Shown piece by piece: positions 5,948 through 40,885 of a stretch of 64,000 nt of DNA. Within the stretch, counting starts at the first letter, position 1; each line of letters opens with the position of its first letter. The notes beneath the pieces were generated by a model that was not told the origin of the DNA, made no database searches, and saw only the letters and a program-made list of their open reading frames with translations. The DNA lies in sequence record NC_055733.1; one strand, given 5' to 3'. Both the position numbers and the translations under genes were made by a program.

Positions 5948-7393
5948 TTACGCTTGTTCGTCGCTACGTGCGCGAGCTTCGTCAAACAGTGCTTTGTTGT
6001 AGCTGTGAGCACAAACACCGTCCATCAGATAAGTAACAAACTCGTTACTGTTCTCATACTGTGCGAATCGCGGGTCAAGAACGTTTACAGTCTTATATTG
6101 ACCGTCGATCTTAACGAGACGCATACGACCAGCTTTGGAAGCTTTCCATGCAGCGTCTTTTGGATTCTTACGAACACCACGCCATTTGCCATTTACGCGA
6201 ATCGCAGAGCATTTGTAAGCCCACTTCTGAGTGTCGCGGTCGCATTTTTGCAGCAAGCCACCACCCATACCGAAAGCAACGTTTTCAACACTGAAACCCA
6301 GTTCTTTGATGAACTTCAAGCAAGCTTCGACATCCTTATCGGAACTCAGGCCGTCTCCTTGAATCACGCGGTAGCTACCATGCAGAACTTTATAACCTTT
6401 GCTGTTTACAGTGAAGCCAACGTTTTTCGCGATAGTCTCCAGTGCATATCCGATATTGTCGAACATGTCGCCAGAGTCAGGACGAATCACGCAAGTACCG
6501 CCACGTGCCAAAATCTCTTTCTTGAATTCACCGGTAGTCAGACGATCAACGGCAGATTTGTAGTCGATAGAGTCAGCAACTACAGCATAAACACCGTCAC
6601 CCCATTGACGAATACTGTTCCAGAATGCTTCATCTTCTTGTTCAGGAGTCAGCATACCTTCATCACCATAACAAATGGTAGTGCTGTGCTCACGCGCTGG
6701 AATACTGATACCAACCGCGATATCATGAGCCAGATTATAGATATCTTGTGCCATAATCAGAGCTTCAACGGTATCGGTACCGATAAAGTTGATCAGGTGC
6801 GCCAGACCACCCAGTTTTGCCGCTTGTTCGCAAGTCGCGCCGCGAGCACCGAAGTCGTGCAAGCGAGTTTTCAGAACGAAATCAAAGTCGGCACCGGTCA
6901 GATCTGAGGTTTCTTTCAGATACTTTTTCACCAGCTTCTTGATTTTGAAACTCAGAGTGGCAACAGAACTCGGATACCAGTGACCACGCAACAGGAAAGT
7001 TTCCAGATGCCCACCAATGCTGAATTCAGGACCGAAAGTCTCAACAACCATAGTTGCATTGCGACCGGGGATAACTTGTCCGTCTTTTACACCGTACATA
7101 TTAACCGGCAGCTTACCACCACGTTCAGTTGCAATTTTCATCCACATGTCATAGGCGAATACATCGCGACCGAAATGTGATTTGTAAAGCATGTTAGCGC
7201 GAGTTACGTCAGCGACGGTAATGCCCTGCTCCAGGACACGCGAAACAAAGTGCAGACCCGATACCATCAACTTATCATCAATACGAGGTTCAGCATAGAA
7301 ACTCGCGGCGTCAGTACCTTGTGGGAACTGCCATGGATGAGTGATTTTGTAAGAGTCGGTGGAAGTACACAGGTTAGATTTAAATACGTTCAT
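5948..7393 (-). CDS. nadV: Nicotinamide phosphoribosyltransferase (NAMPT)
   Basis: TDSYK..H, LHDFGARG, PAREHST, VADS.D, IRPDSGD, RVIQGDG, FGMGGGLLQK.DRDT..WAYK motifs. Start at ATG 7393 after GGAG. Confidence 0.93.
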   Translation of the reverse strand: MNVFKSNLCTSTDSYKITHPWQFPQGTDAASFYAEPRIDDKLMVSGLHFVSRVLEQGITVADVTRANMLYKSHFGRDVFAYDMWMKIATERGGKLPVNMYGVKDGQVIPGRNATMVVETFGPEFSIGGHLETFLLRGHWYPSSVATLSFKIKKLVKKYLKETSDLTGADFDFVLKTRLHDFGARGATCEQAAKLGGLAHLINFIGTDTVEALIMAQDIYNLAHDIAVGISIPAREHSTTICYGDEGMLTPEQEDEAFWNSIRQWGDGVYAVVADSIDYKSAVDRLTTGEFKKEILARGGTCVIRPDSGDMFDNIGYALETIAKNVGFTVNSKGYKVLHGSYRVIQGDGLSSDKDVEACLKFIKELGFSVENVAFGMGGGLLQKCDRDTQKWAYKCSAIRVNGKWRGVRKNPKDAAWKASKAGRMRLVKIDGQYKTVNVLDPRFAQYENSNEFVTYLMDGVCAHSYNKALFDEARARSDEQA

Positions 7394-7514
7394 TTTGAAG
7401 GCTCCCTTCATTGATTGTGGTTTGTTTGTGATTTCTTATCACAAAAAGATTGTCTCATATCTTTAGACACAAAACAAGCTTTTTGTGAGGGGTATTTTCT
7501 ACCCCGTCACGTTA

Positions 7515-12337: not shown

Positions 12338-12420
12338 GATGTTTTCCTCAGTGTTTTGTTTTGCGACGAGTCGCGTTGTTTCGATGTGGACATCATAACA
12401 GGCCGATCCTTGCTGTCAAC

Positions 12421-12447
12421 AAAAAAAGGCACCCGAAGGTGCCTTTT
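12421..12447 (-). terminator. UUCG intrinsic terminator
   Basis: GGCACC-TTCG-GGTGCC-TTTTTTT on the minus strand. Confidence 0.85.
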
Positions 12448-12451
12448 ATTT

Positions 12452-15400
12452 TTATAGCTGTTCGGTGAGTTTCAGATAGTCTTTCAACTCTTTGCCTTTC
12501 AGCTTCTTACACGCTGAATACTCGCGGTACTCTGTGCGCTTGGCTGGGATATAGACACGAACGTATCCGTCATCCTCGTTGCCACCTTCGATTTTGATCC
12601 CAGAAGGGAAATCGACTTTCTTGGGTTCCACGTACTCAAGACGTCCGTTCTTCAATCTCGGCAATTCGCCGTCTCGGAAAGAATACACGATATAATCTTG
12701 AACACCGGAACGCTTGGATTCGGTAAGTAGTTCACTGAACTTCATTGTTTTACTTTCTTCCAATGTTCCCTTCATTTTCTCTTGATATGCTTTGAACTTG
12801 TCGTATCGATTCAGTTCAACCTCATAGCATTTTAGAATTCGCAGTTGTTTTTCTGGACTAAACACTGCCCATTCTGGACTGATTACGTTTGATTTTGATG
12901 TTGCATTAGGCACACCAGCAGAACGATAATCCTTGATAGGCTGACCCAGAATAGATTCCATTTCGAAAACATACCCACGGGTACCAGCTTGACGTCCATA
13001 ACCGGAGTTACCAACGTATTGCAAGATCTTATCAATCTTGTTACTAAAGTAAATCCCGTCACCAAGCATACGTCCAACAACAGATGAATCCTTGCTAGGA
13101 ATAATCTTGAAGCCGTAACGCAAGATCATGTTAGCAGCGATACCACCGGTTCCGTGGAAACATGGAACAACTTGTTCAAGTTTACCAGCGTCGATCTGTT
13201 CTTGCATGAACTTTTTGAATTCACCGTCTGGGAAACTCACGGTCATACTACGCAGAATTAGAGGATAAACGTTACCGTGTTTACCAGCGTAATAGTTATC
13301 GATCAAATGCTTACCAATCAGGTATTTCTGTTCGTTGGTAATATTGTCGTCAACTGCTTTAACTTTCGGAACAACACCGTCACCTTTCGCAGCTTCGGCT
13401 TCCACACGCTTGATATAATCGGTGAACTTCTCATTCTTGCCGAGTTTGATCTTCGCTTGTTTCACCAACTCAGTTGGGTTAATTTCGTTAAACTCAAACA
13501 TCTGCTTAACACGACGACGATCCAACTTGTCGAACAAGTTAATTGGACCCTCAAGAACTTGTCCGTAAACAAACTTGATTGCAGCCAATTGATCTCGCAC
13601 TTTACCACGATAATATGTTTCCAAGTTATCGAAGAAAATGTCCGTGATAGCAGGATCAGTTTCTACGGCGTCAGTCATAATGTCTACCAATGCTTGTTGC
13701 ATACCTTGCTTATGATCACGAACACTGATAGATTTACCGTTCTCGGCGTTAAAGAACTTAAATCCGTTCTTAACTTCAAGCTTCATGAATTCTACCGCGT
13801 CTTCTCCATCAAAATCATAATATTTCAGGAAAGCGGAGTAAAGATTATCATACTTACTGTTTTTATTGATGCCAAGATCGTAAATGTCCAGATCTTTGCC
13901 TAGTGCTCTGTATCCACCAAGGAAAATCTTTTGTCTGTATTCGGGCATTGTACCACGATTCGACATAAAGAAAATTCGAGTCTTAGCACCCGCGTTTGGA
14001 GTTCCCTTGATTTTATTGATAACATATTCAGCACCAGCAGCAACGTCGCTTTCACCATGAATGAAGGCAGCGGACATCAAAGCGTTTTCTTGCTCTTCCC
14101 AAGAAGAACCCACGCTGGTATCTTTTGTGATATATGCATCCAATGCGTCTCTAACTCGCTGCTTCATGCTTGGTACCATGTTATAAGCCATAGCATTAAC
14201 ACGATTCGGGAAAATAACACCAAGCTCAAGAGCACGAATAACACACTTAGCAATCATGGAAACATCTGCCGCGTCCATGTTTTCTAGTGGATATTCAACT
14301 GAACTCTTATAAGAGTCTTTTACTCGCTTGATTGTATCAACGAAATCCGCGTCATCGAGTGCGTACAGTTTAGTCCAATGATCGTTGATGAACGAGAAAT
14401 CGGCGTTGGCTTTATTCGCGGGAGTCAACAGAAACTCAAGTCCATGACGACACATCGAAACTTTGTTATTTGCGTTCCAGGAATCCCATTTATAAGGAGG
14501 ATATACTCGCTTGTATCTTTCCAGCACGTAACTCGTTACTGTATCCCAACCAATCATATCAGCAAATGAGCCGTCAAACAACAGAGATTTGAAAGCATCC
14601 GATAGATAGCTAGAATAGGACATCATATAGACATAAGCAGTTGAAATTACTTCCAACAGGCAATTGAAATACATCTGACGGATAGTAGGAGACATTTCAC
14701 GCATGTATCCCAGAATACCAATTACGATACTATCGCCGTTGGCTCCCTTGTAATGATCAAGCATGTCTTTGCCTAGTTTTCCGCTTGTAATCTCAAGAGC
14801 AACGTCGGTAGTATTAAATCCGAATAGCCAGCAAGTTGGGTCAGACTTAATATTGCCAAAAGTCATTGCCATAGTCTGATAAGCAGAATACGGAATTTGA
14901 TTGCCAAGAATGCCGTACTTTTCTTTTAGCCCACGGAAGAATGAAATGTTGTTGCGTAGAAACTCAACGTTTTTCAATTCCAACGCTTCTTCGATTGCGT
15001 ATACACCCGTGGAATTATCCATAAACAGGAATGCAGCGATTCGTTTTCCGATTTCAGTCAACTGGGTAACAGTGTACACATAACGTTGGCGCCACTTGTT
15101 ATGGATTTCAACTTGTTCTTCGTCGGTAAGATCAAACTCGAATCCAGTTACCATATGTCCTTGATTGCTAACAGTAGGATAAGCCAACTGTGACATTGCC
15201 TGTAATCCTCTCAGACCGGTATCAGAATCAACGCACTTTTCAATCTGACTGGAAATGAATTGGAGCAATCCCGCTTCATGATCATATGTCAGATAGTCTG
15301 GCTGAACAGGAACAGCTACAGGCTCGTCCTGGACGCTCGGAGCAGCATCATCGGTAACGTCATTGACGTCAGGAGAAGCGTGGACTTGTGCCACGTTATC

Positions 15401-16090
15401 GTTCTTGTCGTCGTCATCATCGTCACCTACATTCGATGTAACACCTGCACCAGCAGCAGTACCGACAGTTACGGTATTTACACCAGCAAGGCGCGCATAC
15501 TTAACATACATACTAACTGTCCACAAATCTTCACCCGCTTCTGGGAATTTCTTCAAGACTCGACGCAACTCTTTGGAAGTGTCGATCAGACTAATAGCTC
15601 CGGTCTTGAACTTATTCATTAGCTCACGGAGCTTAGGATGCAAGTTCGTCAGCGCGGTAGATTTGATGTTTGCTACCCAACCACGGACGATATCATCATC
15701 AACGGTATTAATAACACCAGCTTTACACTTAACTAGGAAGCGGGTCATTTCGCTTACCTTAGCGTCACTGATAAACATTTTCTTATCAGCCATGAGTTTC
15801 AACACCAGAGAAATGTTATGGTTATCGTCTCCGATATTCTTTAACATCAACTGGCCGTCACTCTTGAAATAACGCTCATACTTGCGCAGGCTAGACAGGT
15901 GATTCATCTGGCGAGCGGCATTGAAACTACCAAGAATACCGATGAAGTTGAACATGAAAGCATTCATGATCGCGGTTTCATCATCAACAAATGTTGCCTT
16001 GTTTGCGGCATCATACATGGTATTTTCTGCCAAGAAGCGTTGGTATTCCTCTTCTTCTTGACGTTCGAATAATTGTTTGGTTGTTAACAT
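12452..16090 (-). CDS. 1212-aa protein with a C-terminal PARP-like (H-Y-E) ADP-ribosyltransferase domain; probably late and virion-packaged (Alt analogue)
   Basis: CFHGTG, GRMLGDGIYFS and SPEWAVF motifs; CTAAATA late-promoter motif at ~16124-16130. Confidence 0.75.
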   Translation of the reverse strand: MLTTKQLFERQEEEEYQRFLAENTMYDAANKATFVDDETAIMNAFMFNFIGILGSFNAARQMNHLSSLRKYERYFKSDGQLMLKNIGDDNHNISLVLKLMADKKMFISDAKVSEMTRFLVKCKAGVINTVDDDIVRGWVANIKSTALTNLHPKLRELMNKFKTGAISLIDTSKELRRVLKKFPEAGEDLWTVSMYVKYARLAGVNTVTVGTAAGAGVTSNVGDDDDDDKNDNVAQVHASPDVNDVTDDAAPSVQDEPVAVPVQPDYLTYDHEAGLLQFISSQIEKCVDSDTGLRGLQAMSQLAYPTVSNQGHMVTGFEFDLTDEEQVEIHNKWRQRYVYTVTQLTEIGKRIAAFLFMDNSTGVYAIEEALELKNVEFLRNNISFFRGLKEKYGILGNQIPYSAYQTMAMTFGNIKSDPTCWLFGFNTTDVALEITSGKLGKDMLDHYKGANGDSIVIGILGYMREMSPTIRQMYFNCLLEVISTAYVYMMSYSSYLSDAFKSLLFDGSFADMIGWDTVTSYVLERYKRVYPPYKWDSWNANNKVSMCRHGLEFLLTPANKANADFSFINDHWTKLYALDDADFVDTIKRVKDSYKSSVEYPLENMDAADVSMIAKCVIRALELGVIFPNRVNAMAYNMVPSMKQRVRDALDAYITKDTSVGSSWEEQENALMSAAFIHGESDVAAGAEYVINKIKGTPNAGAKTRIFFMSNRGTMPEYRQKIFLGGYRALGKDLDIYDLGINKNSKYDNLYSAFLKYYDFDGEDAVEFMKLEVKNGFKFFNAENGKSISVRDHKQGMQQALVDIMTDAVETDPAITDIFFDNLETYYRGKVRDQLAAIKFVYGQVLEGPINLFDKLDRRRVKQMFEFNEINPTELVKQAKIKLGKNEKFTDYIKRVEAEAAKGDGVVPKVKAVDDNITNEQKYLIGKHLIDNYYAGKHGNVYPLILRSMTVSFPDGEFKKFMQEQIDAGKLEQVVPCFHGTGGIAANMILRYGFKIIPSKDSSVVGRMLGDGIYFSNKIDKILQYVGNSGYGRQAGTRGYVFEMESILGQPIKDYRSAGVPNATSKSNVISPEWAVFSPEKQLRILKCYEVELNRYDKFKAYQEKMKGTLEESKTMKFSELLTESKRSGVQDYIVYSFRDGELPRLKNGRLEYVEPKKVDFPSGIKIEGGNEDDGYVRVYIPAKRTEYREYSACKKLKGKELKDYLKLTEQL

Positions 16091-16140
16091 TTATGTTCCT
16101 CATTGGTGAGCTTTAATTTACTATATTTAGTGCGTCCAGC

Positions 16141-16245
16141 ACTGCGGCGTAAGCCGCTAGAGTAGAAAAGACAAAATAAAATCTCTTATAGATCTTTAAT
16201 GAGAATCTATTTTGTCTTCCTTAAGGTAATCAATGAGTTAGCTTC
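16141..16245. repeat. Dispersed palindromic element, copy 1 of 3
   Basis: GCGGCGTAAGCCGC hairpin, AAGACAAAATA...TATTTTGTCTT inverted repeat and AATCAATGAGTTAGCT; near-identical to the copies at ~45800 and ~45990. Confidence 0.9.
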
Positions 16246-16275
16246 GCAGTCGCCGGCGCGACTTCCTACAACTGA

Positions 16276-17178
16276 TTAACTTTTGTGCAAATAACTTGGT
16301 AAATGATCAATCATTGTACAAACAACTCGGTGAGTGAACTCTTTAACAATACTATCAACTAGATCTTGTCGTTTGATATTCTCTACTAGCCAAGGAGTAA
16401 ACTCTTGACTTTTGTACTGGACAGTTGTATATGCGCCAATCATTGATCCATATATACTTGCGATTGTGTCGCTATCTAATCCCATGTTTGCTATGAGAAA
16501 AATCCCATACTCTTTGTGTTCGAACTCTAGGAACACTCTCCAAGCGATTGTGAGCGAGTCCTTAACGTAGCCAGTAGGCAAGCATGAGTCTTCATCGAAA
16601 TACGCTCCAAACTCTTTGGATAGCGTCCTTTTGTTTACTCCGTCGAATATCCGATGCATGATACGAACATATAGCATAGAGTAATGCAGACACAACGGAA
16701 CCGGATGGGTAAACTCCGTCATGTATTTAACGATTCGCTCGATATCTTCTGGACTTCTACCGTAAGTTGCAATCGCGACTGGATACATACGCATGAGCGC
16801 GCCGTTACCGGCACCTTTAGATGGGTCTGTTACCGGTTGGTCCTTGAGTATGGCATAGGCAGTACCTGTACCAACATCAAAGCACTCGCCAGTGGAAGAA
16901 AACGCACCACGCTCGATCCAACGCTTCATATCGCGTTTAATAGCTGGAACATCAAACTCACCATATTTGAAGTTGCGCATGGTGATCAGCGCACAGGTGG
17001 TATCGTCTGTGAAGTTACCGTATTGATTGTTAAAAACATCGCGTTTTGTTTTCAGGAGTTCGAGATCTACGTTACGCAGTCTTTTCTTTCCTTTAGTGCC
17101 GAAATTGAATTCGTTGAATGCGCCTACGCAATCGCCAATGATTGCAGCTTGTGTGGTGTTTTTGATAATGTCGATCAT
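16276..17178 (-). CDS. ADP-ribosylglycohydrolase (ARH/DraG family)
   Basis: IIGDCVG, FTDDT, DVG, GNGALMR..P, THP and G.DSDTIASIYG motifs. Confidence 0.9.
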   Translation of the reverse strand: MIDIIKNTTQAAIIGDCVGAFNEFNFGTKGKKRLRNVDLELLKTKRDVFNNQYGNFTDDTTCALITMRNFKYGEFDVPAIKRDMKRWIERGAFSSTGECFDVGTGTAYAILKDQPVTDPSKGAGNGALMRMYPVAIATYGRSPEDIERIVKYMTEFTHPVPLCLHYSMLYVRIMHRIFDGVNKRTLSKEFGAYFDEDSCLPTGYVKDSLTIAWRVFLEFEHKEYGIFLIANMGLDSDTIASIYGSMIGAYTTVQYKSQEFTPWLVENIKRQDLVDSIVKEFTHRVVCTMIDHLPSYLHKS

Positions 17179-30352: not shown

Positions 30353-31154
30353 TATTATTTAGTTAGATGTTTTCGTGAGCTTCGCACATCATTTCAGCCA
30401 ATGTGTCTTCGTTGTCACTAACAATCAAACAACGAGACTCATGAAGTTCAAGACGATACGGATCCAAATCACCATAGCAGTATTCGGCACCACTTTTCAT
30501 GATATCGCGAATTTCATCGGCACAATCTTCGATGTAATCCTCATCTACAATATCTTTTTGATTCAGAAATGCAATGATTTCCCAACGGTGATGAACAACT
30601 TTCTTTTTATAGCCTTCAATCATCAGAATCATGTTCGTATTCCCAGTTAGCTTGATGTAAAGCTTGGTGCATTTTAAAGTTGAAATCGTCTTTCTGTCTA
30701 GCCAGTTCTCTCCTGAATGCGAACTCACTAACAGAAGCAATCAACATCTTTTTATCTTCTACGGCGTTAAACGGCGACTCCGCAACATAAACAAGTCTAT
30801 TTTGTTGGTGCATTTCGTTGATGTACCGACAAACGCGAGCTCCGTTATGGAACTTACGTGCGAGATAAAGACGTTGAAACCGAGACACCCGGATGTTTTT
30901 CTGCTTGTCAAAGTCGTAATAATGCATTATATGTCCAAATCCCCAAAACTCTCTTCGGTATGTTCTTCTATCGAGAATCGGTAGCTTTCGCTATATCCTT
31001 TATCGGAATACTCAGCACTAGCGCGAGCGACAACGGATTCAGCAACCTTTTTGTCGGTACGAACGGCATAGAACTCTTTGTATTCTCCGCCGTATTCTAT
31101 ATCAAAGAACGAACGGATTACAATATAAAACATGATTATTTCCTCAGATGAATT

Positions 31155-31229
31155 TGGTGGCCCCGAGCGGACTCGAACCGCTTTTCTTCGCTTATGAGGC
31201 GAGCACATTTACCATTATGTTACGGGGCC
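31155..31229 (-). tRNA. trnI2: tRNA-CAT, probably Ile2 (lysidine type)
   Basis: Acceptor GGCCCCG/CGGGGCC-A-CCA resembles enterobacterial tRNA-Ile2; loop CTCATAA. Confidence 0.8.
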
Positions 31230-31271
31230 GTTTGTTTATAGGAACCATTATTACACAGTTCCTAATGATAG

Positions 31272-31658
31272 TCAACCTTTAAGATTCAATTTGTATCTAA
31301 TCGAAGTCAAAAACGTCATGATATCTTCCAGTGCATTCACCAGATCGAAATGTCGTTTAGTCTCCAAATACTCATGCACCATAGTACACTCTTGCAGGAA
31401 ATTGTCAATCAACATTTCAACTTCAACTTCCGCATGAGTAGCAGTAAAGCTCTGAGCATATCCACGAGCGATAGCGTATTCTGCAAAGCTATCAATCAGC
31501 TCTGGAAGTTCTTCGTAATACGCTTGGAGCGCTTTGTGACGGCTATAGATAGTAGTAGTCAGGTGTTGGTGATGAACGTATGCCACGCTTTTCAGAAGCT
31601 TGGAAATTAGTTCGCCAACACTTGAGTTTGTATCACCTTTGAAATCTTTGAAACTCAT
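31272..31658 (-). CDS. Ferritin/Dps-like four-helix protein (DUF5856-like)
   Basis: H.QH..T..YSRHKALQAYYEELPELIDSFAE pattern. Confidence 0.7.
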   Translation of the reverse strand: MSFKDFKGDTNSSVGELISKLLKSVAYVHHQHLTTTIYSRHKALQAYYEELPELIDSFAEYAIARGYAQSFTATHAEVEVEMLIDNFLQECTMVHEYLETKRHFDLVNALEDIMTFLTSIRYKLNLKG

Positions 31659-31704
31659 ATTATACTCCTAATGAAAAAGGGAGCCGAAGCTCCCTTTATT
31701 TATC

Positions 31705-31782
31705 TGGTGCGCCAACTCGGACTCGAACCGAGAAACAACTGATTCTAAATCAGCTAGGTAGACCAATTCCCATCATTGACGC
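31705..31782 (-). tRNA. trnL: tRNA-Leu(TAG), short variable region
   Basis: Loop TTTAGAA, A73, encoded CCA; only 5 nt between the anticodon and T stems. Confidence 0.8.
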
Positions 31783-31788
31783 ATTGTT

Positions 31789-31876
31789 TGGAGGAGAAAG
31801 TGGGATTCGAACCCACGGACCCTTGCGGGCCTACGAATTAGCAATCCGATACGTTCGGCCTCTCTGTCATTTCTCC
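31789..31876 (-). tRNA. trnS: tRNA-Ser(GCT)
   Basis: Loop TTGCTAA, long variable arm, CCA. Confidence 0.92.
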
Positions 31877-32232
31877 GTATTCTTTGATGTATTCGGCAAC
31901 TCGTTTAATCTGTTCCCATTGAGAATCAGTAACACGCTGACCGGATAACACGAACGAGGCTCTTACATTTTCCTCGATCTCTTTCTTTAAGCTTTGCAAT
32001 AGTGAGTGCCTCTTCGAACAAAACCACCAAAATCTTTCTGACCAATGCAGTGAACACCGCGAGTAACTTTAATCAGTCCAAGCTTTAGCAGCTTTTCGAT
32101 TTGTTGATTGGTACATCTGGCATCACCTTGAGTAGTAGCGAAACCGTATGAATCAGCTTTATCAGCGAAACGGGATGCCAGCTCAAGATCTTGTTTTGTT
32201 GCTTTCATGATATAACTCTCTATTGTTTGATT

Positions 32233-32327
32233 TGGCGGAAGCGATCCGATTCGAACGGATGGACGAGGGGATACCTCGCCGTCAGTTTTCAAGACTGGTG
32301 CAATAAGCCGGACTCTGCCACGCTTCC
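32233..32327 (-). tRNA. trnS: tRNA-Ser(TGA)
   Basis: Loop CTTGAAA, long variable arm, G73, CCA. Confidence 0.93.
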
Positions 32328-32467
32328 AAATTCTTCGACACGGCTTTATGTCGTCATGACTCTTGAACATTACGTTCTGGCTACATACGCGCATCACCTT
32401 CCCGTTTGATAATTTAACGAGTTACGGGAATCATAGCAGCTCATTTTTAGCCTTTGCAAGCTAAATT

Positions 32468-32543
32468 TGGCGGGGGTAACTGGGCTCGAACCAGTGCATG
32501 ACGGAATCAAAGTCCGTTGCCTTACCAACTTGGCTATACCCCT
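32468..32543 (-). tRNA. trnQ: tRNA-Gln(TTG)
   Basis: ACGGA-CTTTGAT-TCCGT; CCA. Confidence 0.93.
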
Positions 32544-32555
32544 ATAAACTGGGAC

Positions 32556-32638
32556 GAATATGAACGTTTAACGTGGATCATCGTCTTATCTTTCGGACAA
32601 CGTATTTCTACGGCCTACTAAGGTAACTCCACATATTC
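32556..32638 (-). ncRNA. Candidate multi-junction small RNA
   Basis: GAATATG/CATATTC and TGGA/TCCA close a junction holding GNRA-type hairpins (CGTA-GAAA-TACG). Confidence 0.5.
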
Positions 32639-32831
32639 AAACGATGCAACGCTTGAATCAATTCAAAGAACTCTATATTAGAATACTTTGAAATGATCCA
32701 CAAGTGAATCACTCGCCCCTTAAATCGCATCACCGATCAAATCGGGAGAGGGAATTTTCAGCTGGACTTCTAACAAAGTTTCCTAGGACATCGTTAGCAT
32801 TCTCTTTAACAGGCCTTTGCAGGCAACTCTG

Positions 32832-32905
<74 letters not shown>

Positions 32906-32920
32906 AATATTCTTATAAAA

Positions 32921-33034
32921 TGGGGCGCTAAGGTAGAGAATCGAACTCTACATGAAATCAATACCGACGGGGCAATCTATATCCCGACTTTCGAGAAGCT
33001 ATCTCATTGCACTTAAAAGCATTAGCGATTTCAC
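32921..33034 (-). ncRNA. tRNA-like RNA with T arm and CCA but a non-tRNA core
   Basis: GTAGAG-TTCGATT-CTCTAC, CGCTAA/TTAGCG terminal pairing, 3' CCA, and two internal hairpins. Confidence 0.65.
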
Positions 33035-33052
33035 CTTTCAAAGCGATTAAAC

Positions 33053-33128
33053 TGGTGCGCCGAACTGGAATCGAACCAGTGACCAACGGAATTTCAACCC
33101 GTCACTCTACCTGCTGAGTTATCGACGC
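33053..33128 (-). tRNA. trnF: tRNA-Phe(GAA)
   Basis: ACGGG-TTGAAAT-TCCGT; CCA. Confidence 0.93.
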
Positions 33129-33136
33129 AAAATTTG

Positions 33137-33211
33137 TGGGTGACGGACGGGCTTCGAACCCGTGACTACCAGGATCACAACCTGGAGTTCTACCAACTGA
33201 ACTACCGCCAC
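33137..33211 (-). tRNA. trnH: tRNA-His(GTG)
   Basis: CCAGG-TTGTGAT-CCTGG, C73; the base at -1 is T, not G. Confidence 0.9.
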
Positions 33212-33292
33212 ATAAATGATCACTCGAAAGAAAGCATTTATGTAACGAGTTACACACCAGATGCTACAAACGGGGCATCTGGATCCCTCTTA

Positions 33293-33377
33293 TGGTGCTC
33301 GGCACAAGATTCGAACTTGCGATGCCTTTCGGTCTGGATTACAAAACCAGTGCATTCAACCACTCTGCCAACCGAGC
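33293..33377 (-). tRNA. trnY: tRNA-Tyr(GTA) copy 1
   Basis: Loop TTGTAA in stem CTGG/CCAG, long variable arm, CCA. Confidence 0.9.
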
Positions 33378-33386
33378 GTTTTAAAT

Positions 33387-33478
33387 TGGTGGATGCGGTA
33401 GGATTCGAACCTACAACGTTTACCCTGTGGGGCCAGATTTACAGTCTGGTGCAATACCACCGTCATTGCAGCACATCC
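33387..33478 (-). tRNA. trnY: tRNA-Tyr(GTA) copy 2
   Basis: CCAGA-CTGTAAA-TCTGG, long variable arm, CCA. Confidence 0.92.
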
Positions 33479-33503
33479 ATTATTCGTTATTTAGTACGCT
33501 AAG

Positions 33504-33577
33504 AAGCGAGTACCTGATTCGAACAGGTGATCTCTGGGATATGAGCCCAGCGAGGACGGCCTCTCCTCCAACTCGCA
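33504..33577 (-). tRNA. trnfM: Initiator tRNA-fMet(CAT)
   Basis: Three consecutive G-C pairs (CTGGG/CCCAG) and an unpaired 1:72 position; no CCA. Confidence 0.85.
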
Positions 33578-33597
33578 TCTTAGCGCACTAATCAATT

Positions 33598-33673
33598 TGG
33601 TTCTCCGTATGGAATTCGAATCCATGTTACCGCCGTGAAAGGGCAGTGTCCTAGTCCACTAGACGAACGGAGA
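33598..33673 (-). tRNA. trnE: tRNA-Glu(TTC)
   Basis: CTGCC-CTTTCAC-GGCGG; CCA. Confidence 0.92.
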
Positions 33674-33677
33674 TCTG

Positions 33678-33917
33678 TCAGTAAGCGAAACTAAACAATC
33701 GTCTTTGTTTTGCTTTTAAGTCTTCTTCGACAACAGGAACATTATCACATGTTTCCGCAGTAGAGTAAACATCTTTTTGTTTTTCTTTTTCAGCGGCTTC
33801 CGCAGCTTTCTTTCTAGCAAGTGGACCAACGTTTTTCCACAAAGGCGCGTTGTACCATGCTGCACTACATTGATTCGCTGAGCCACGATTGGCACGAGCG
33901 TCTAAATCATTACTCAT
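33678..33917 (-). CDS. Small late-promoter ORF
   Basis: GGAG RBS and ACTAAATA motif at ~33944-33951. Confidence 0.55.
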   Translation of the reverse strand: MSNDLDARANRGSANQCSAAWYNAPLWKNVGPLARKKAAEAAEKEKQKDVYSTAETCDNVPVVEEDLKAKQRRLFSFAY

Positions 33918-33960
33918 TTACTAACTCCGTCTAAATTACAACAGTATTTAGTAACCAAAT

Positions 33961-34086
33961 TTAAATGCACTGTCGCGATCCCCGTAGGTGGTTCCCACCT
34001 ACTAGCCTTTGTTCGCACAAGCTTGCGGCTCTTAGCTACATACGAGGGCTTATCTCGTCCCATTTAGGTTAGGGCAATGCACTTAA
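33961..34086 (-). ncRNA. Candidate ~125-nt multibranch RNA
   Basis: Terminal TTAAGTGCATTG/CAGTGCATTTAA stem; internal ACGAG/CTCGT, TAGC/GCTA and GTAGGTGG-GAA-CCACCTAC stems. Confidence 0.6.
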
Positions 34087-34089
34087 ATT

Positions 34090-34163
34090 TGGTGGAGACG
34101 GCGGGATTTCCACCCGTATCTCAGATCCCAGTGACCTGCGATTATGAAGTTATCTACGTCCCC
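34090..34163 (-). ncRNA. 74-nt tmRNA-TLD-like / Ala-identity mini-RNA
   Basis: GGGGACG/CGTCTCC with G3-U70, A73 and CCA; no D stem; CAGGTC/GATCTG stem; degenerate T loop TGGAAAT. Confidence 0.65.
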
Positions 34164-34210
34164 GAGAAGGCTTAAACGTAACGAGTCAGAGGTTTAAGCG
34201 CGATTGAATT

Positions 34211-34285
34211 TGGTGGTGCATAGTAGATTTGAACTACTGACCGACGGCGTATGAAACCGCAGCTCTACCACTGAGCTAATGCACC
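34211..34285 (-). tRNA. trnM: tRNA-Met(CAT), elongator type
   Basis: Loop TTCATAC, canonical arms, CCA. Confidence 0.85.
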
Positions 34286-34477
34286 AGACGGTATCAAGAG
34301 TCGATACCGAGGCAATAATATTGATTTAACTCATACTACCGCTATATAGGCCGCAGTATAAGAAGCGCGTTGGTGTCAATAGTAACGTTTAAGTTATTCG
34401 CCCCACACAACAATCACCGCTTTTTATAGCCTATCGCCACGCAATAAGCAATCTACCTATTGATTGACTCGACTATT

Positions 34478-34554
34478 TGGTGAGTCGCCCGAGATTCGAA
34501 CTCGGGACCTTCTGATTAAAAGTCAGATATTCTATCCAACTGAATTAGCGACTC
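34478..34554 (-). tRNA. trnK: tRNA-Lys(TTT)
   Basis: TCTGA-CTTTTAA-TCAGA; CCA. Confidence 0.95.
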
Positions 34555-34560
34555 ATTGTT

Positions 34561-34635
34561 TGGCAGGGCGCGGGAGACTCGAACTCACATCGCGCGGTTT
34601 TGGAGACCGGCATAATACCGTTATACTAACGCCCT
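34561..34635 (-). tRNA. trnW: tRNA-Trp(CCA)
   Basis: CGGT-CTCCAAA-ACCG, G73, CCA. Confidence 0.92.
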
Positions 34636-34814
34636 AGAATTCTTACCAGCTATCAAAATCTGTAATAGGAACGCTCTTTGCGCCTTCTTTGACAGCTTTC
34701 GCACTTACTACAGTACCGATTGAACCGCTTTGATATTCAATGTTTCGTGCATCTGCATGAGTTCCATCATACGCTGTAATTCGGTAACTGAAAATCTTAC
34801 AATCATTTTTGCAC

Positions 34815-35414
34815 CTACACAATAGGACTTTCGATTATGACGTCAAGAACGGAATAATACGTGCTGTATTCCGAACTCATATCATCGTAATATGCGCGAA
34901 CTTTGCTTTCGGCATCGTCTACGTCTTCCGCTTCTACCAACTTAATGGTATCGAATGACTTAGAGGAACCCATGTATTCGCTTTTCATATAACGTATCTT
35001 AGCAAGAAACATCATCGTTGTAAACTACCTTTTAGCCGCTAGTTTGAAATATTCGCTGTTCGGTACCGACATCGGTTGAACACCAGTTAACTCAAGAGCT
35101 ATTAAACTCGGCATAGCTTTGAGGATAAGAGGCATCTGTATCTTATCAGGCAACGGACGCTTTTCAAGTTTGATTTTTCGAATCTCTTGCCACTGATTCC
35201 GTTCTTCGCAGGCTTTCAGTAGCTCAAGTTCTAAGTCATTGCTATAGTTAACACCATACGCGATTACGCTATCAAATTCAACTGGATTTTGATCAACATA
35301 CTCGATGATCTGCCGTAAAGTTTCGACGTCATCTTGAAACCAACCGCAGTTGATAAAACAATTTCCGACACAATCGCCGTTCTTCATGAACAGCGCATAA
35401 CTAGGTGCGCTCAT
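34815..35414 (-). CDS. Two small hypothetical ORFs inside the tRNA cluster
   Basis: 34815..35015 and 35025..35414, with RBSs. Confidence 0.55.
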
Positions 35415-35429
35415 ATTTTATTTCTCATT

Positions 35430-35504
35430 TGGAGTACCGAGTCTGGTTCGAACAGACGATAAAGTGATTTGCAATCACTTGCCTTACCTCTTGGCTATCG
35501 GCAC
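35430..35504 (-). tRNA. trnC: tRNA-Cys(GCA)
   Basis: AGTGA-TTGCAAA-TCACT, U73, CCA. Confidence 0.93.
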
Positions 35505-35511
35505 GTTAATC

Positions 35512-35584
35512 TGGAGCGAGTGAGGAGAATCGAACTCCCTATCTACGGCTTGGAAGGCCGAGCGCGTACCTTACGCACACTCGC
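35512..35584 (-). tRNA. trnG: tRNA-Gly(TCC)
   Basis: CGGC-CTTCCAA-GCCG, U73, CCA. Confidence 0.9.
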
Positions 35585-36203
35585 TTTTACAACTTTTTAT
35601 GTGTTTGATCATTCCACCAGTTTTCTTACCGGTTCTACCGCATTTTGGACACGATATAATTGGTCTATTATCTGGTGCGTTTTTGACCGACTCTGAAATT
35701 TTTCTTCTAGTTTCTTCACTTTTTGGCAAACTGGCAATTTTAGCAAGTTTCTCGAAGTGAAGTTTAGCATTTTCTGGATCTTTACGAACCCAGCTATTAC
35801 TTCGTATTTTATTTTTGGATTCTTCCGAATGTCGGAATTTACTAGCCATTTCACTTAATATTTTCTTGGTTTCTTCTGTGTGATGTTTACCGTGAAATTT
35901 CGAAACAGCTCCAGAGTTTATCCAATCCCACCCGCCTTCTCCACCAATCTTCAAATTGTATGTATCATCGCGGCCTACAAAATCACTGTCAACAATTTCA
36001 CGTTCTTTGAGATACATTTCTTCCTTTGTCTGGAATTCGTAAAGTATCTCCTTTTTGAAGTTATCAATCCCGTATTTGGAAATAGATAGTTTCAAATGTT
36101 TACCGGAGCCCATATACCCATCATTTTCATCTGATGTCTTATGTGCGCCTATGTAGAATTTGCCGTTTATTTTGTTGGTGATTTTATAAATTAAGTATTT
36201 CAT
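35571..36203 (-). mobile_element. Freestanding GIY-YIG (Seg-type) homing endonuclease
   Basis: LIYKITNKINGKFYIG.H...DGYMGSG...KYG..NF.KEIL; NUMOD3-like HTEETKKILSE repeats. Confidence 0.9.
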
Positions 36204-36260
36204 CGGAACTCCAAAAAAGGAATACCGAGCGCCTCACGGCGTGTCATTAAATCAAAAATT

Positions 36261-36334
36261 TGGTGGAGCACGGGGACTCGAACCCCGGATCTCTGCGTGC
36301 AAAGCAGAAGTGTTCCCAATTATACCATGACCCC
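36261..36334 (-). tRNA. trnA: tRNA-Ala(TGC)
   Basis: TCTGC-TTTGCAC-GCAGA, G3-U70, CCA; the 3' acceptor strand is one base short. Confidence 0.85.
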
Positions 36335-36344
36335 AAATTCTAAT

Positions 36345-36550
36345 AGATACTCGAAAGTATACATTAGAATAGGCACTTTATGCAAGTACCTACGCAAGTC
36401 TTCGGATTCACATACGGGAGTGGTGACTAACCCACGTTACTTTTACCTGCTGTTCCCTCTCAGCCGCACATCCAACTACCGAAGCAAAGGAGTGCTATCT
36501 TTTAATAGTAGATTTGAAGTTTTGTATTGGTTGCAGAAGTGAATCCATAC
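36345..36550 (-). ncRNA. Candidate ~150-200-nt structured RNA
   Basis: Long-range GGATTCAC/GTGAATCC helix enclosing several hairpins; no ORF on the sense strand. Confidence 0.55.
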
Positions 36551-36609
36551 ATTTTCAAAGAGCATTGAACTACTGTCGGGTAAGTTCATTTTTCCTACTA
36601 GGTAGAAAC

Positions 36610-36686
36610 TGGCAGTGACGACGGGGCTCGAACCCGCGCTCTCCGACGTGACAGGCCGGAATTTTAACCAACTAAACTACGTCACT
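36610..36686 (-). tRNA. trnD: tRNA-Asp(GTC)
   Basis: CCGGC-CTGTCAC-GTCGG, G73, CCA. Confidence 0.93.
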
Positions 36687-36692
36687 AGAAAC

Positions 36693-36767
36693 TGGTAGCC
36701 ATGGGCAGGCTTGAACTGCCGACCCCACCCTTATCAGGGGTGTGCTCTACCACTGAGCTACATGGCT
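36693..36767 (-). tRNA. trnI: tRNA-Ile(GAT)
   Basis: CACCC-CTGATAA-GGGTG; CCA. Confidence 0.95.
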
Positions 36768-36804
36768 ATAAACTGGAAGACTTTTAACTGCCACCTGGAC
36801 TCTT

Positions 36805-36887
36805 GTGCTAGAGAGTTGAGGAATCGAACCTCACCGTTTTCTTAACAATAGAAAATTCGAATGGTTTGCTGAAATCTTCCGTAGCAC
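36805..36887 (-). ncRNA. Degenerate tRNA-like RNA (T arm, no D arm, GTT-containing hairpin)
   Basis: GTGCTA/TAGCAC ends, TGAGG-TTCGATT-CCTCA, TTTTCT-ATTGTTA-AGAAAA. Confidence 0.55.
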
Positions 36888-36903
36888 GGTAAATTGTTAT
36901 TTG

Positions 36904-36977
36904 CGGAGGAGACCGGACTCGAACCGGTGACCTGTCGCTTAACAGGCGAATGCTCTAACCAACTGAGCTACACCTCC
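36904..36977 (-). tRNA. trnN: tRNA-Asn(GTT)
   Basis: TCGC-CTGTTAA-GCGA, G73; no CCA. Confidence 0.92.
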
Positions 36978-37074
36978 CAAATAACAACTCTAATCAATAA
37001 GAAACGGAATGAACTTTTAGGCTATTTCAATATAATGGCTTTTTAAGTTGGTTGCTGAACTCATTCCTATCTTT

Positions 37075-37290
37075 GTTTACTATACACTACTATTTAGTGA
37101 CTGTAAACAAAGCTTCTTAAATTTTTGACAGGCTCACTTTTGTTTTTCATCCGCAGAAAAGTTTTGATTGCTGAACGGAGCCTTATAAAGATTGTATCAC
37201 GTTTTATCAACGCTGTAAACTATCTTTTATTTATGCTCTACTTTAAGAGCATGTGATAATGATAGCACAGTGTTTTAATAGAGTAAACAA
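37075..37290 (-). promoter_or_regulatory. Three tandem T4-early-type promoters driving the tRNA cluster
   Basis: GTTTAC(A/T)-N17 followed by TATAGT (~37080), TACAAT (~37192) and TATCAT (~37259); the first also contains ACTAAATA. Confidence 0.8.
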
Positions 37291-37324
37291 TCTTTTTCTC
37301 GATATCCCACACATTGTTTCATGC

Positions 37325-37525
37325 TACTGCCGGTTGAGTCCGAAGACCGAATAAGGGTTCACTTCCACGTTAGGTTTACGGCATACCGAGAAAAAGACAG
37401 TCCGCATCACAGTGTTAGCGCAAGGGGTTCCACTGTCACTAAGTTATTTAGTGTCTACTGTCAACCAGCTAGGTGGGCGCTGGTCCCGTCCATACGAGCA
37501 TGATGCCACCAATACATGCTCGGAA
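37325..37525 (-). ncRNA. Candidate ~200-nt structured RNA with possible kissing loops
   Basis: CGAGCATG/CATGCTCG, ACCAGC/GCTGGT, GACAGT/ACTGTC and GGTC-TTCG-GACT stems; loop complementarity GGTGG/CCACC. Confidence 0.6.
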
Positions 37526-37556
37526 AGATCTTACGGTTTTTCAAATCTCGAAATCT

Positions 37557-39781
37557 TTACTTGTCGTAATAATATGGCTTGCATTGACCTTCGAACTTGG
37601 TTTGACCACCGAACAATCCAACGCGATTCTCGCCATATGTATCTTGTGCATTTTCCTCCGCGACTTTCAGCGCGGCTCTGCATTCTGCTTCGGTGTCGAA
37701 CTTCTCAATTGTATGGCTATGTGAGCCATAATTGGTACCAAAGTTAACGAACAACGAAGTAATCAACAAGAACTTAATCATAACATCACCTATTGGCATT
37801 GTAAACTTATTTAGTATCGCAGGAATACACTTCTTTCACGCGAGTTACAGAACGTTTGGTAACGTTAATGGAGCTACCCTGATACCAGCGAGACTCAGAG
37901 TCCAGCACTTTGTCAACAACTGCCTCAGACTTAGGCAGAATCACATCAAAGCAGGTTTGTCCCATTTTGTCTTTCATGTGCGACCAGATAGACAGCGAGA
38001 AACGTTCGAGTTTGTTACAGACTTTTACCTTGCACATTTCTTCGGACTGAGCGCCGAAAGATAACAGCGCGAGCAGAATTACGGCAGCTTTCATTCTTCA
38101 ATCTCCACAACTCGATTTGTTTTTACAAGATGATCCCACAGCTTTTGATAAGAGATTGAATAATCTTCTTTATCGTTGCAGCAAGAACAGCCTTGTTCAT
38201 AGTAAACGGTGATCCAGTTCATGTCAAGCTTATAGCCACATCCGTAGAAATGACGACTACCGTGACTGGGTTTACCCAGCTCATAGTTTACGACCTCTTC
38301 CAGTGCGGTATCAATACCGTCAGAATCGATGAAGTCTTCCGCCGCGTCTTGCTTACGCAAAGCGTCCATAAAGTCAAACAGATTATCAATGTTCATGATT
38401 ATTTCTCACAATTAACACACATATAAAAAGGCATTGATGCTGCAACGGCACCACTAATGGTAAGACCATACGGGAGAAAATTGCCACATTTGCATTTTGA
38501 TTGCTTTCGATAGTTGACTTTCTCAACAGAACGAATCATAACACGGCACAACGATTGAAGCAAGAACTTATTCATTTTATTTTCCTCATTAGCCATAGTA
38601 ATACGTTATCGCATTAATATGGCGGCTCTTTCGAGCCACCTTTTAGAAATCGGGCCATTCGTCTCTCACGATTAGACCCCCCCCTTGAACTCCACGATAT
38701 TTGAAATCTCGTTGAACTCACCGTACTTCTGCATTGACGGAACAATGTTGCCATTCTCGTCATGAATCAGATCTGGATTTTCTTTCCAGCTACCGACTGG
38801 ATACATGTATTCTGACACAGCATCCGAATTCAAGTCAACAACTAATTTCGGACTGATTTTTAGTGGGTATTCGCGAGTCTGATCATTCTCAGCACCAGCT
38901 ACCACAATTCGAGTCATCAGATCGGCATGATACAGATGATCGTTGTCCTGACTGCCGTATTGTTGTGGGTTAAACTCGATGATGAGTTCACACAACATGC
39001 TAACAAACTTACGGAGTCCGATATGCAGATCTGCATTAGCAGCGGTGAGTTTAATAACAAGGTTTGTCAAGTTGTTTTTAGAGTAAGGACCCATTCCTAC
39101 ATTGACAACGCTATCATATTCCCAGGAGAAACCCATACTGAGATATTCATTGAACAGATCCTTTCTCAGTTCATCACGAATGATCTCTGGCTCCTTCTCG
39201 ATTTCTTCCAGTCTAAAAGTGAGTTCTTCTTTAGTCAAGCGTTTTTTATCTGGATCACGAATTGCAAGCCTGGCGAAAGTATCGCGGATCTCTTTATGCG
39301 ACTTGATAGCGTAGTCTTTGTTCCATGATTGTTCCAATTTGCGGTCATATTCTGCTACCATCAGATCATAGACTTTCCGCTTGATTACCATGAACATAAC
39401 TGGAGATTTCTTTGCACCGCTGAATGAGAAAGCTGGCTGAATATACAAAGCTTCTTCGTGCATCAAGTCCTGATATGACAGCTTTTTCGGATCGAATAGA
39501 TCATCAATGTTAACATTACGTTCTTCGTCACAAACGATATAAGTCTTTACCATGTCTTGGAACGCTTGGTATGCGTCGTTATCTTCGATCTCGAAGTTAC
39601 CATAGTCATCATATGTCGCATACATCGGAAGATGCATAGCGAGCTGGTATCGATCCCAGTTATAGCAACCAGGTGCGGCTGGAATAGTTTCTCCGTTACA
39701 AACGAGTGCCAGCAGAACAACCGGTTCGCCACATGTAACGATATGACGACTAACGCCACAAATAGTATTGAAAGAACCCAC
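37557..39781 (-). CDS. Hypothetical ORFs (two exported small proteins, 38091..38396, 38399..38596, 369-aa 38672..39781)
   Basis: Signal peptides in 37557.. and 37807..; co-oriented. Confidence 0.55.
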
Positions 39782-39836
39782 GTAATTTTCCCTTGATTAG
39801 GTTACAAAAAAGCCCCAGTTAAGGGGCTTATGATAA

Positions 39837-40226
39837 TTAAGCGATAGCTTCCAGAACAGCTTCCAGAGATTCTTCGATCATGACGCGATTCGGTACGTCA
39901 TACTCGGAAGTGCGGAAACTCAGAAGAACTTCACCGTGAATGTTCTCATGCAGACCAACGATCTTGTCGGCACCAACTACGAACTTCGCAATGCCACGAT
40001 GTTCAACCGGAGTAACAACAGCGCGTTTGATGTAGCAATCTTTCAGTTTCAGCGCCAGATCTTCGAAACGCTCGGCAACAGTATACACAGTCGGCAGTTG
40101 ACCGTCAACTTTTACAGTCAGCAGAGTCTTACCAGAATGCAGCTTTACCAGACCAACAACTTTCTCGGAGTTGACTACGAAACGGGTGATTTTACCAGCT
40201 ACAGGGGATACAACAAAACGGGACAT
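39837..40226 (-). CDS. Protein of two tandem FlbD-like repeats
   Basis: Internal duplication: FVVNSEKVVGL...TVAERFEDL / FVVGADKIVGL...IEESLEAV. Confidence 0.55.
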   Translation of the reverse strand: MSRFVVSPVAGKITRFVVNSEKVVGLVKLHSGKTLLTVKVDGQLPTVYTVAERFEDLALKLKDCYIKRAVVTPVEHRGIAKFVVGADKIVGLHENIHGEVLLSFRTSEYDVPNRVMIEESLEAVLEAIA

Positions 40227-40492
40227 TTTAGTTCCTTAAACAGTGATAGAAAATACATGCTGGTCATTCTCAATGATTCCAGCGTTGTTGTCAACGAAAA
40301 TTTCAAAATTCATTTCCTTTGACGCTTCGATGTGAGCTTTCGCAGCTTCTAATGCCACTACACTCGGGTATTCCGAACGATTTCCAGCGAAAATACAGAT
40401 GCCGTTTAGACCATAAACACGTCCACTAAAGCTTCCGTCTTCATCTTGGTCCAGTATACAGACAAGTTTCAACGTGTCAACCTCTTTTCGTT

Positions 40493-40577: not shown

Positions 40578-40582
40578 GAATT

Positions 40583-40861: not shown

Positions 40862-40885
40862 TCAATGTGTTCTAATAGACTGGAA

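Follow-up and report, generated by a model that had tools for sequence, protein, structure and literature searches.

The closest described relative of the protein studied here, the Aeh1 protein ORF131c (Aeh1p141), has been reported as one of two viral pART homologues with a large unrelated N-terminal part (Otto et al. 2005; PMC1266365), as one of the viral PARPs with a conserved triad (Perina et al. 2014; PMC4245714), and, in a 2023 Cell review, as a 'putative functional PARP-like protein of unknown function' (PMC10789625). Iyer et al. (2022) described an 'ART-ARG pair in Aeromonas phages' and argued that many phage ADP-ribosyltransferases (ARTs) in general are packaged in the head (PMC9503650). 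The literature on the Aeh1 protein is silent on its expression class, on any packaging signal, on how far its family extends and on what it does (PMC1266365, PMC4245714, PMC10789625), and we found no published experiment on the PARP-like protein of either Aeh1 or Ah1. Here we examine its counterpart gp126 of Aeromonas phage Ah1, together with the adjacent hydrolase gp127, in a stretch of 64,000 nucleotides from record NC_055733.1 (hereafter the window). Since the PARP-like protein and its hydrolase neighbor were reported for Aeh1 and Aeromonas phages between 2005 and 2023, the finding is already known as a prediction; what is added here is evidence pointing to late expression and to targeting of the protein to the head, and the finding that the hydrolase is no more than an optional neighbor. 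The reading that we favor over all others, at about even confidence, is that gp126 is a head-packaged, injected ADP-ribosyltransferase of the PARP (H-Y-E) type.

The window is 100% identical to Ah1 (NC_055733 / MG250483; Straboviridae, Cinqassovirus), of whose genome it spans positions 62001-126000, and is 99% identical to avDM12-TAAL and 85% identical to Aeh1. The gp126 gene (12452-16090 including the stop codon, minus strand, as are its parts given below) codes for an acidic protein of 1212 residues and about 137 kDa, which matches phrog_18612 over its full length and is annotated in the Ah1 record only as a 'hypothetical protein'. A sequence-only reading of this DNA had proposed a 1212-residue open reading frame (ORF) with PARP-type H-Y-E signatures, and we find the frame open, with FHGT at residues 978-981, GRMLGDGIYF at 1006-1015 and SPEWAV at 1071-1076.

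The PARP-type ART catalytic domain occupies residues 906-1100 (12791-13375) and includes H979, Y1014, K1021, Y1025 and E1073. Its score against the Pfam PARP model PF00644 is marginal (24.5 bits for whole gp126 and 26.8 bits for a C-terminal fragment, against a gathering cut-off of 26.7); the same model is matched by 22 of the 22 homologues retrieved with the C-terminal fragment, the best at E 4.5e-11. A 22-sequence alignment keeps Y1014 and E1073 throughout and H979 in at least 90% of its sequences; across 121 family members all three triad residues are at least 90% conserved. HMMER comparison with PDB sequences aligned FHGT with the His block of PARP1, GDGIYF with its Tyr block, and K1021 and Y1025 with its Lys and second Tyr. 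When an AlphaFold model of residues 761-1212 (predicted local distance difference test, pLDDT, 81) was used as a Foldseek query, the top matches were PARP1 catalytic fragments (E 1e-10), and VIA-align superposed model residues 148-337 on tankyrases, PARP10 and PARP1 with Z of 15-15.7, the best being tankyrase 1 (Z 15.7, root-mean-square deviation (rmsd) 3.3 A, 173 residues aligned), followed by PARP10 (Z 15.3) and PARP1 (Z 15.2). Given the PF00644 matches of the homologues, the preserved triad, the block alignment with PARP1 and the fold match, the ART assignment is sound, and we are highly confident that gp126 is truly an enzyme of the PARP fold and that its NAD site is intact. The ART core is also weakly matched by phrog_23333 (383 positions). 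The suggestion that this is a different class of ART from Alt is borne out: gp126 has an H-Y-E active site in a PARP fold, it shows neither an R-S-E active site nor Alt-type sequence, and Ah1's own Alt (gp251) is unlike it.

This domain is preceded by a helical region (residues 761-905; 13376-13810) that the AlphaFold model and the family alignment show to be kept in the family, and is followed by a conserved C-terminal beta-rich domain (residues 1101-1212; 12455-12790), likewise evident in the alignments and the model. In a comparison with the helical regulatory domain of PARP1-3, Foldseek aligned about 370 columns with helical domain plus ART (HD+ART) fragments, but with template-modelling (TM) scores of 0.3-0.4 only; VIA-align of the 761-1212 model reaches only back to model residue 88. 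Separate pieces of gp126 had no matches in a Pfam scan, and specifically none to PARP_reg. As a candidate for the C-terminal beta domain the WWE domain was rejected, having matched one of the 22 relatives (E 0.008) without generalizing. Of the approximately 950 N-terminal residues previously left unassigned, residues 761-905 can thus be accounted for as the helical region preceding the ART domain, and residues 1-760 are still without a known fold.

Structure prediction for this remaining part, which had been suggested with the sequence-only reading, was run with AlphaFold on residues 1-760 (60-sequence alignment) and gave a very confident all-alpha N-domain (residues 25-195, pLDDT >90), a disordered acidic linker (202-253) and an all-alpha remainder of moderate confidence. 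On combining this with the alignments we delineate a conserved all-alpha N-domain that is the signature of the family (about residues 23-205; 15476-16024), an acidic low-complexity linker predicted to be disordered (about residues 206-265; 15296-15475; pLDDT 35-40) and a variable all-alpha middle region (residues 266-760; 13811-15295), of which residues 445-760 gave only generic alpha-solenoid matches. The prediction did not lead to a known fold: Foldseek against PDB and BFVD and a wide VIA-align search with the N-terminal model recovered only its own family or generic alpha-solenoids (Z <=10), a result that is provisional for the N-domain, as the search used the 1-760 model and not the domain folded alone. 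The ESM Atlas likewise offered no usable match for residues 1-760.

At the sequence level, a word search with residues 1-760 recovered full-length relatives only. A profile of the N-domain built from six relatives and run against 1.84 billion representatives found at least 210 clusters (180 with an E of 1e-10 or lower), and the match always covered profile positions of about 15-250 and lay at the extreme N-terminus of phage proteins of 1050-1560 residues. Among 150 listed clusters together with gp126 and its close relatives, every protein of at least 900 residues (137/137) also carries the PARP ART domain, 115 of these additionally have the helical region and the C-terminal domain, and 17 short members resemble fragments. 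The N-domain also heads the 1202-residue 'PARP catalytic domain protein' of Stenotrophomonas phage Ps15 (hhalign probability 98%) and the 1394-residue 'ADP-ribosyltransferase' of Xanthomonas phage BUDD (97.5%). gp126 accordingly belongs to a large family of giant proteins, encoded by T4-like phages, that combine an N-terminal all-alpha domain with a C-terminal PARP cassette.

Several members of the family show unusual arrangements. Some uncultured phages encode two such giants in tandem, of about 1050-1310 and 1310-1540 residues (L032:7163-15138, L039:7883-16466 and L043:7883-16451). In two viral contigs (L036:2334-5286 and L037:7897-10849) the gene is split into an N-domain ORF of 411 residues and a PARP ORF of 526 residues, which could reflect a frameshift, a natural split or an assembly error. 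Phage AsFcp_1 (MN871440) shares 89% DNA identity with window positions 15663-17178, that is, over the hydrolase gene, the spacer and the first 140 or so PARP codons; its hydrolase is 99% identical to that of Ah1, and the remainder of its PARP protein is only 44% identical and PX29-like, a pattern of sequence identity that indicates a probable recombination junction inside the conserved N-domain.

The N-domain is preceded by a short leader (residues 1-22; 16025-16090) with LFE at residues 7-9 and YQRFLAE at residues 16-22. The latter heptad resembles the YQEFIAE of the T4 internal proteins IPII and IPIII, both of which begin MKTYQEFIAE. In T4 the first ten residues of the capsid-targeting sequence (CTS) suffice for head targeting, with residues 4 and 7 directing targeting and residues 8 and 10 directing cleavage by gp21, and Alt is likewise processed by gp21 (PMC9026906; CTS properties are also covered in PMC9958956). 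In gp126 the two targeting positions are aromatic and the cleavage positions read [IL]-x-E, the whole being shifted by 12. YQRFLAE is the sole match to YQxF[LI]AE in a six-frame translation of the Ah1 genome, and the leader was found in no other Ah1 ORF. When the family is aligned on the glutamate (n=133), this residue is present in 133/133 sequences and L, I or V occurs two residues earlier in 129/133; in the 121-sequence alignment no residue of the N-terminal 760 other than E22 is invariant. Many leaders in the family are ten-residue peptides, such as MKKFNEFIQE, MKNFKDHLKE and MKRLQSFIAE. Ah1 itself encodes the gp21 protease and core proteins.

The sequence-only reading had also placed gp126 behind a late promoter. 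The canonical T4 late promoter TATAAATA, of which the Ah1 genome has six copies, one of them in the window, is not upstream of gp126 and was dropped as its promoter; the claim holds for the phage's own late motif of the CTAAATA type, ACTAAATA (16124-16131, minus strand), which lies 33 nt before the ATG. CTAAATA is situated 18-60 nt before gp9, wac, gp15, gp19, gp20, gp22, gp23, uvsW and the alt region of Ah1, and the motif is found at the same place before the gp126 orthologues of Aeh1, phiAS5 and PX29. For a wider count we took 72 IMG/VR loci, dereplicated at 80% identity to 40 family clusters: NTAAATA occurs at -26 to -64 in 26 of the 40, several of those without it having doubtful start codons, versus 106 of 1401 (7.6%) other ORFs (Fisher p 7e-19, odds ratio 22.7). 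The layout is kept even where the gene lies among replication genes, Ps15 and Moby having a terminator, then GATAAATA and then the giant gene. Directly 3' of the gp126 stop is a strong terminator-like hairpin (12424-12447, minus strand), after which a near-consensus promoter of the sigma-70 type (12392-12419) serves the next genes; with the hairpin and this promoter following it, gp126 constitutes an insulated unit within a run of small genes of early type. A late-type promoter motif on one side and a terminator on the other thus set the gene apart as a unit of its own, and its late expression is probable.

Between gp127 and gp126 lies a conserved intergenic region of 185 nt with three hairpins (16091-16275, minus strand). 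Across Ah1, Aeh1, phiAS5 and PX29 this spacer is better conserved than both of the genes that it separates. Among its hairpins are a long, AU-rich one (16166-16220), in which PX29 has three compensatory pair changes, and a GC one whose loop reads UUAC. A predicted long-range stem of 7 bp, pairing 16231-16237 with 16099-16105, covers part of the gp126 Shine-Dalgarno sequence and is present in both the minimum free energy (MFE) and the centroid folds (z = -4.9). By analogy with T4 gene e, read-through early transcripts might be untranslatable, with only those from the late promoter being translated. Elsewhere in Ah1, seven CTAAATA motifs cluster on the minus strand of the tRNA-gene region (genome 92362-103975; window ~30360-41975), several without a following ORF, and may be late promoters for tRNA or small-RNA transcripts.

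A different line of evidence comes from the N-terminal modules of related giants. Ralstonia phage RSP15 has two adjacent giant ART genes (L047:3765-11083), with one for an Alt-like protein of 1047 residues directly upstream of one for a PARP-like protein of 1373 residues. The ART region of the former is Alt-like (E 1.2e-15 to Ah1 Alt), and the two proteins share a 200-residue N-terminal module at 66% identity (E 4e-81). The C-terminal PARP cassette is the same in pf16, RSP15 and some relatives from metagenomes, but there it follows an N-terminal module different from that of Ah1. The occurrence on one module of two ART classes, one of which is packaged in T4, is the best indirect argument that these N-terminal parts are delivery modules. 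The giant of pf16 and three metagenome giants begin with a module like that of RSP15, and its first residues, LxTELF[DN], recall the MELITELFDE of T4 Alt; this resemblance is not statistically significant and serves as a lead only, and comparison of T4 Alt with the RSP15 module gave no significant similarity. Two further relationships were considered and discarded: hhalign of the N-terminal profile of the Ah1 type against Ah1 Alt gave a probability of 0.4%, and comparison of the Ah1-type N-domain with the RSP15/pf16-type module found them unrelated. Alt is not detectable in Ps15, BUDD or pf16.

Four features taken together make packaging plausible: the late promoter motif, the leader that resembles a CTS, the [LIV]-x-E kept across the family and the RSP15 module shared with an Alt-like protein. 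Judging from these, we hold head packaging and injection of gp126 to be an evenly poised proposition. In the sequence of events that we propose, the gene would be transcribed late by machinery of the gp55 type, and the leader (YQRFLAE, then N23) would act like a T4 capsid-targeting sequence. If it does so, gp126 would join the prohead core and be trimmed by a protease of the gp21 type after Glu22, perhaps also after Glu9. It would then enter the next host with the DNA and use host NAD to ADP-ribosylate host or nucleic-acid targets, as a second effector beside Alt and of a different chemical class. gp127 would be a lineage-specific accessory made from other, non-late transcripts, which may limit or reset ADP-ribosylation in the infected cell. 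Also in favor of this reading, one relative's gene sits between gp23 and the tail and lysis genes. More tentatively, the family as a whole could be an unrecognized class of giant internal head proteins in T4-like phages of many hosts, composed of a leader, a 'loading' domain and a PARP cassette; these would be injected as a second effector distinct from Alt, and as the sole one in Ps15, BUDD and pf16, with loading modules swapping between Alt-type and PARP-type proteins as in RSP15 and the early-made hydrolase of the Aeromonas phages erasing the mark once it has served.

Several observations weigh against packaging of a PARP-type effector. T4 late promoters serve genes for non-packaged proteins too. 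Most relatives have the gene in a neighborhood of replication genes (gp32, dexA, rnh, gp43, gp44/62, regA). The CTS-like heptad begins at residue 16, versus residue 4 in T4, and the full aromatic/hydrophobic pattern is present in only 23-38 of 103 family leaders. N-[ST]-L-Y is conserved right after the glutamate, so that the [LIV]-x-E motif may be structural and not a cleavage site. In the HMMER alignment with PDB sequences an isoleucine occupies the position of PARP1 Ser904. Searches yielded no virion proteome for carriers of the family such as pf16 and Ps15, and no RNA run with raw reads that covers the window. Finally, gp127 as a DraG/Tri1-like hydrolase fits arginine-linked ADP-ribose, which is atypical of PARP chemistry.

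This last point bears on the relationship between gp126 and its neighbors. The sequence-only reading had noted a complete DraG/ARH hydrolase gene upstream, with NAMPT about 5 kb away, and both are found in place: gp127 (16276-17178, minus strand; annotated draG / ADP-ribosylglycohydrolase in the Ah1 record), a DraG/Tri1-like ADP-ribosylglycohydrolase (ARH) of 300 residues, matches PF03747 over its full length at 115.8 bits (cut-off 26.2; E 3.8e-33) and phrog_6572 at 6.5e-114, and NadV/NAMPT (gp114; 5948-7411, minus strand) lies downstream, separated by 5041 bp from the PARP stop. The observation concerning gp126 and gp127 is therefore real and was accurately described. gp127 is the only ARH copy in the Ah1 genome, and its TDDT (57-60) and DSDT (235-238) align with the metal motifs of Lmo0067 and the Thermus thermophilus ARH. 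Its best solved relatives are Lmo0067, the Thermus ARH, Tri1 and DraG, with ARH3 at only ~1e-4. NCBIfam ranks Tri1 and DraG first, both far under their equivalog cut-offs (NF041672, 71 bits vs 490; TIGR02662, 62.6 bits vs 337), and the alignment to the Tri1 model covers positions 104-354, the N-terminal extension of Tri1 being absent. gp127 thus resembles Tri1 and DraG but is a member of neither named equivalog.

The adjacency of the two genes is kept in phages of the genera Cinqassovirus, Angelvirus and Chrysonvirus and in one metagenome relative whose PARP protein is 40% identical. No ARH was found within 10 kb in any non-Aeromonas IMG/VR locus (about 60 other family members), beside the distant full-length relatives P0029 and P0030, or anywhere in the complete genomes of Ps15, BUDD, pf16, Ahp1_CNU-2021 and RSP15, all of which encode a PARP giant. 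Conversely, ARH homologues occur in phages without the giant, namely Cronobacter phage S13, jumbo phages of Erwinia, Serratia and Salmonella, and Streptomyces phages. A Macro-domain protein, pf16 gp88 (L016:7987-8472; annotated hypothetical), is encoded four genes (~2 kb) downstream of the giant PARP gene gp92 of that phage and could be an alternative eraser in that lineage; pf16 is the only phage with a Macro domain near the giant gene. As the ARH and the PARP giant are not co-conserved, a point that the sequence-only reading itself had named among its refuting conditions, an 'own eraser' fails as a property of the family: the adjacency is limited to the Aeromonas subclade and one metagenome relative, and gp127 survives only as a lineage-specific association and not as an obligatory partner. 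The proposed NAD supply fares similarly as a general rule, since NAMPT lies within 10 kb in only 7/63 loci, from three lineages; with a cytidylyltransferase-like (NMNAT-type) gene abutting the giant gene in a few other loci, the NAD link is recurrent but weak. The earlier picture of an injected enzyme with its own eraser and NAD supply is right in part: the different ART class is borne out, and late expression and packaging are plausible. That gp127 acts on the products of gp126 is possible but on the doubtful side.

If gp127 is not tied to gp126 at all, it might serve the arginine-specific Alt by resetting RNA polymerase and other targets, or strip ADP-ribose placed by host defenses, and the adjacency would be inherited synteny. 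The preference of gp127 for Lmo0067, Tri1 and DraG over ARH3 among its matches, the presence of Alt in Ah1 and the mutual independence of ARH and PARP giants across phages all speak for this. The adjacency and the conserved spacer, however, persist down to 40-45% protein identity, and Ahp1_CNU-2021 has Alt and the PARP giant without an ARH, so that the ARH does not track Alt either; on balance we think a complete lack of connection rather unlikely.

It is less likely still that gp126 is a late enzyme that stays within the producing cell and acts, like a DNA-responsive PARP, on DNA ends or on replication, recombination or packaging proteins. Such a role would suit the location of most relatives' genes (immediately behind gp32, in a neighborhood that includes dexA, rnh, DNA polymerase, clamp loader, uvsW and gp46), as well as the helical region before the ART domain, as in PARP1-3, and the late promoter before Ah1 uvsW. 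Those locations, though, are boundaries of conserved gene blocks, which are common insertion sites in T4-like phages; no DNA-binding domain was detected in 900 residues; and an intracellular role does not explain why the extreme N-terminus carries an invariant [LIV]-x-E and a heptad resembling a CTS, nor does it explain the N-terminal module that the RSP15 giant has in common with an Alt-like protein.

Least probable is the published reading of Iyer et al. (PMC9503650), a toxin-antitoxin-like pair of a PARP-like ART toxin and an ARH enzymatic antitoxin, as in DraT-DraG, acting in superinfection exclusion or self-protection: it draws on the adjacency kept across four genera of Aeromonas phages and in the metagenome relative at 40% identity, and on AsFcp_1, where the ARH, the spacer and the PARP 5' end appear to have moved together, but adjacency with co-inheritance is found in the Aeromonas subclade only, about 60 family members lack an ARH within 10 kb and five complete genomes lack one altogether, a Macro domain is near the giant gene in pf16 alone, the 185-nt spacer with its hairpins and the separate late-promoter motif make co-regulation of the two genes improbable, a classical addiction module has no obvious use in a lytic T4-like phage such as Ah1, and a protein of 1212 residues with 900 extra ones is unlike known toxins of such systems.

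Apart from this locus, gp8, wac and gp23 are each entered in the Ah1 record as two overlapping coding sequences (8_1/8_2, window 60095-61080; wac_1/wac_2, genome 128563-131669; 23_1/23_2, genome 146478-148090), which suggests frameshifts or sequencing errors in essential structural genes.

For twenty years, phage PARP-type enzymes have carried the label 'putative, function unknown'. Should they prove to be effectors packaged in the head, phages would possess two chemically different ADP-ribosylation weapons delivered at injection. With its 210 or more clusters, the family would readily supply biochemistry with PARPs that have bacterial targets. The late motif, the YQRFLAE leader and the Glu22 site make the packaging question directly testable. 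The attractive picture of a writer with its eraser is at the same time corrected: since the hydrolase is optional, lineage-specific and of the arginine-specific type, its action on PARP products is not to be assumed.

Compared with the systems already described, gp126 shows no essential difference from Aeh1 ORF131c, its orthologue, which has 85% protein identity, equal length and the same ARH and NadV neighbors. With T4 Alt it shares a late-type gene, a large size, with additional regions flanking the ART domain, and, as predicted from its leader, the logic of an N-terminal propeptide cleaved by gp21 after a glutamate. Alt, however, is an arginine-specific R-S-E (ARTC-type) enzyme that is known to be packaged and injected, whereas gp126 has an H-Y-E site in a PARP fold, has no sequence similarity to Alt and is a putative passenger of the head. 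With the eukaryotic PARPs (PARP1/2/3, tankyrases and PARP10) it has in common the ART fold (rmsd 3.2-3.4 A over ~170 residues), the alignable His, two Tyr, Lys and Glu of the NAD site and a helical region N-terminal to the fold; it differs in its identity of only 14-20%, in an isoleucine for the Ser904 equivalent, in the absence of all of the eukaryotic accessory domains and in the presence of its own N-terminal domain and C-terminal beta domain. As in DraT-DraG and Tre1-Tri1, the ART gene adjoins a gene for an ARH-family hydrolase, and gp127 is closest to Tri1 and DraG; DraT and Tre1 are R-S-E enzymes acting on arginine, unlike gp126, and the gp126-gp127 pairing is not conserved across the family of PARP giants. 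Lastly, the YQRFLAE of gp126 is like the YQEFIAE of T4 IPII and IPIII but lies 12 residues further from the initiator methionine, and, in contrast to these small and basic internal proteins, gp126 is a large acidic protein with a predicted leader.

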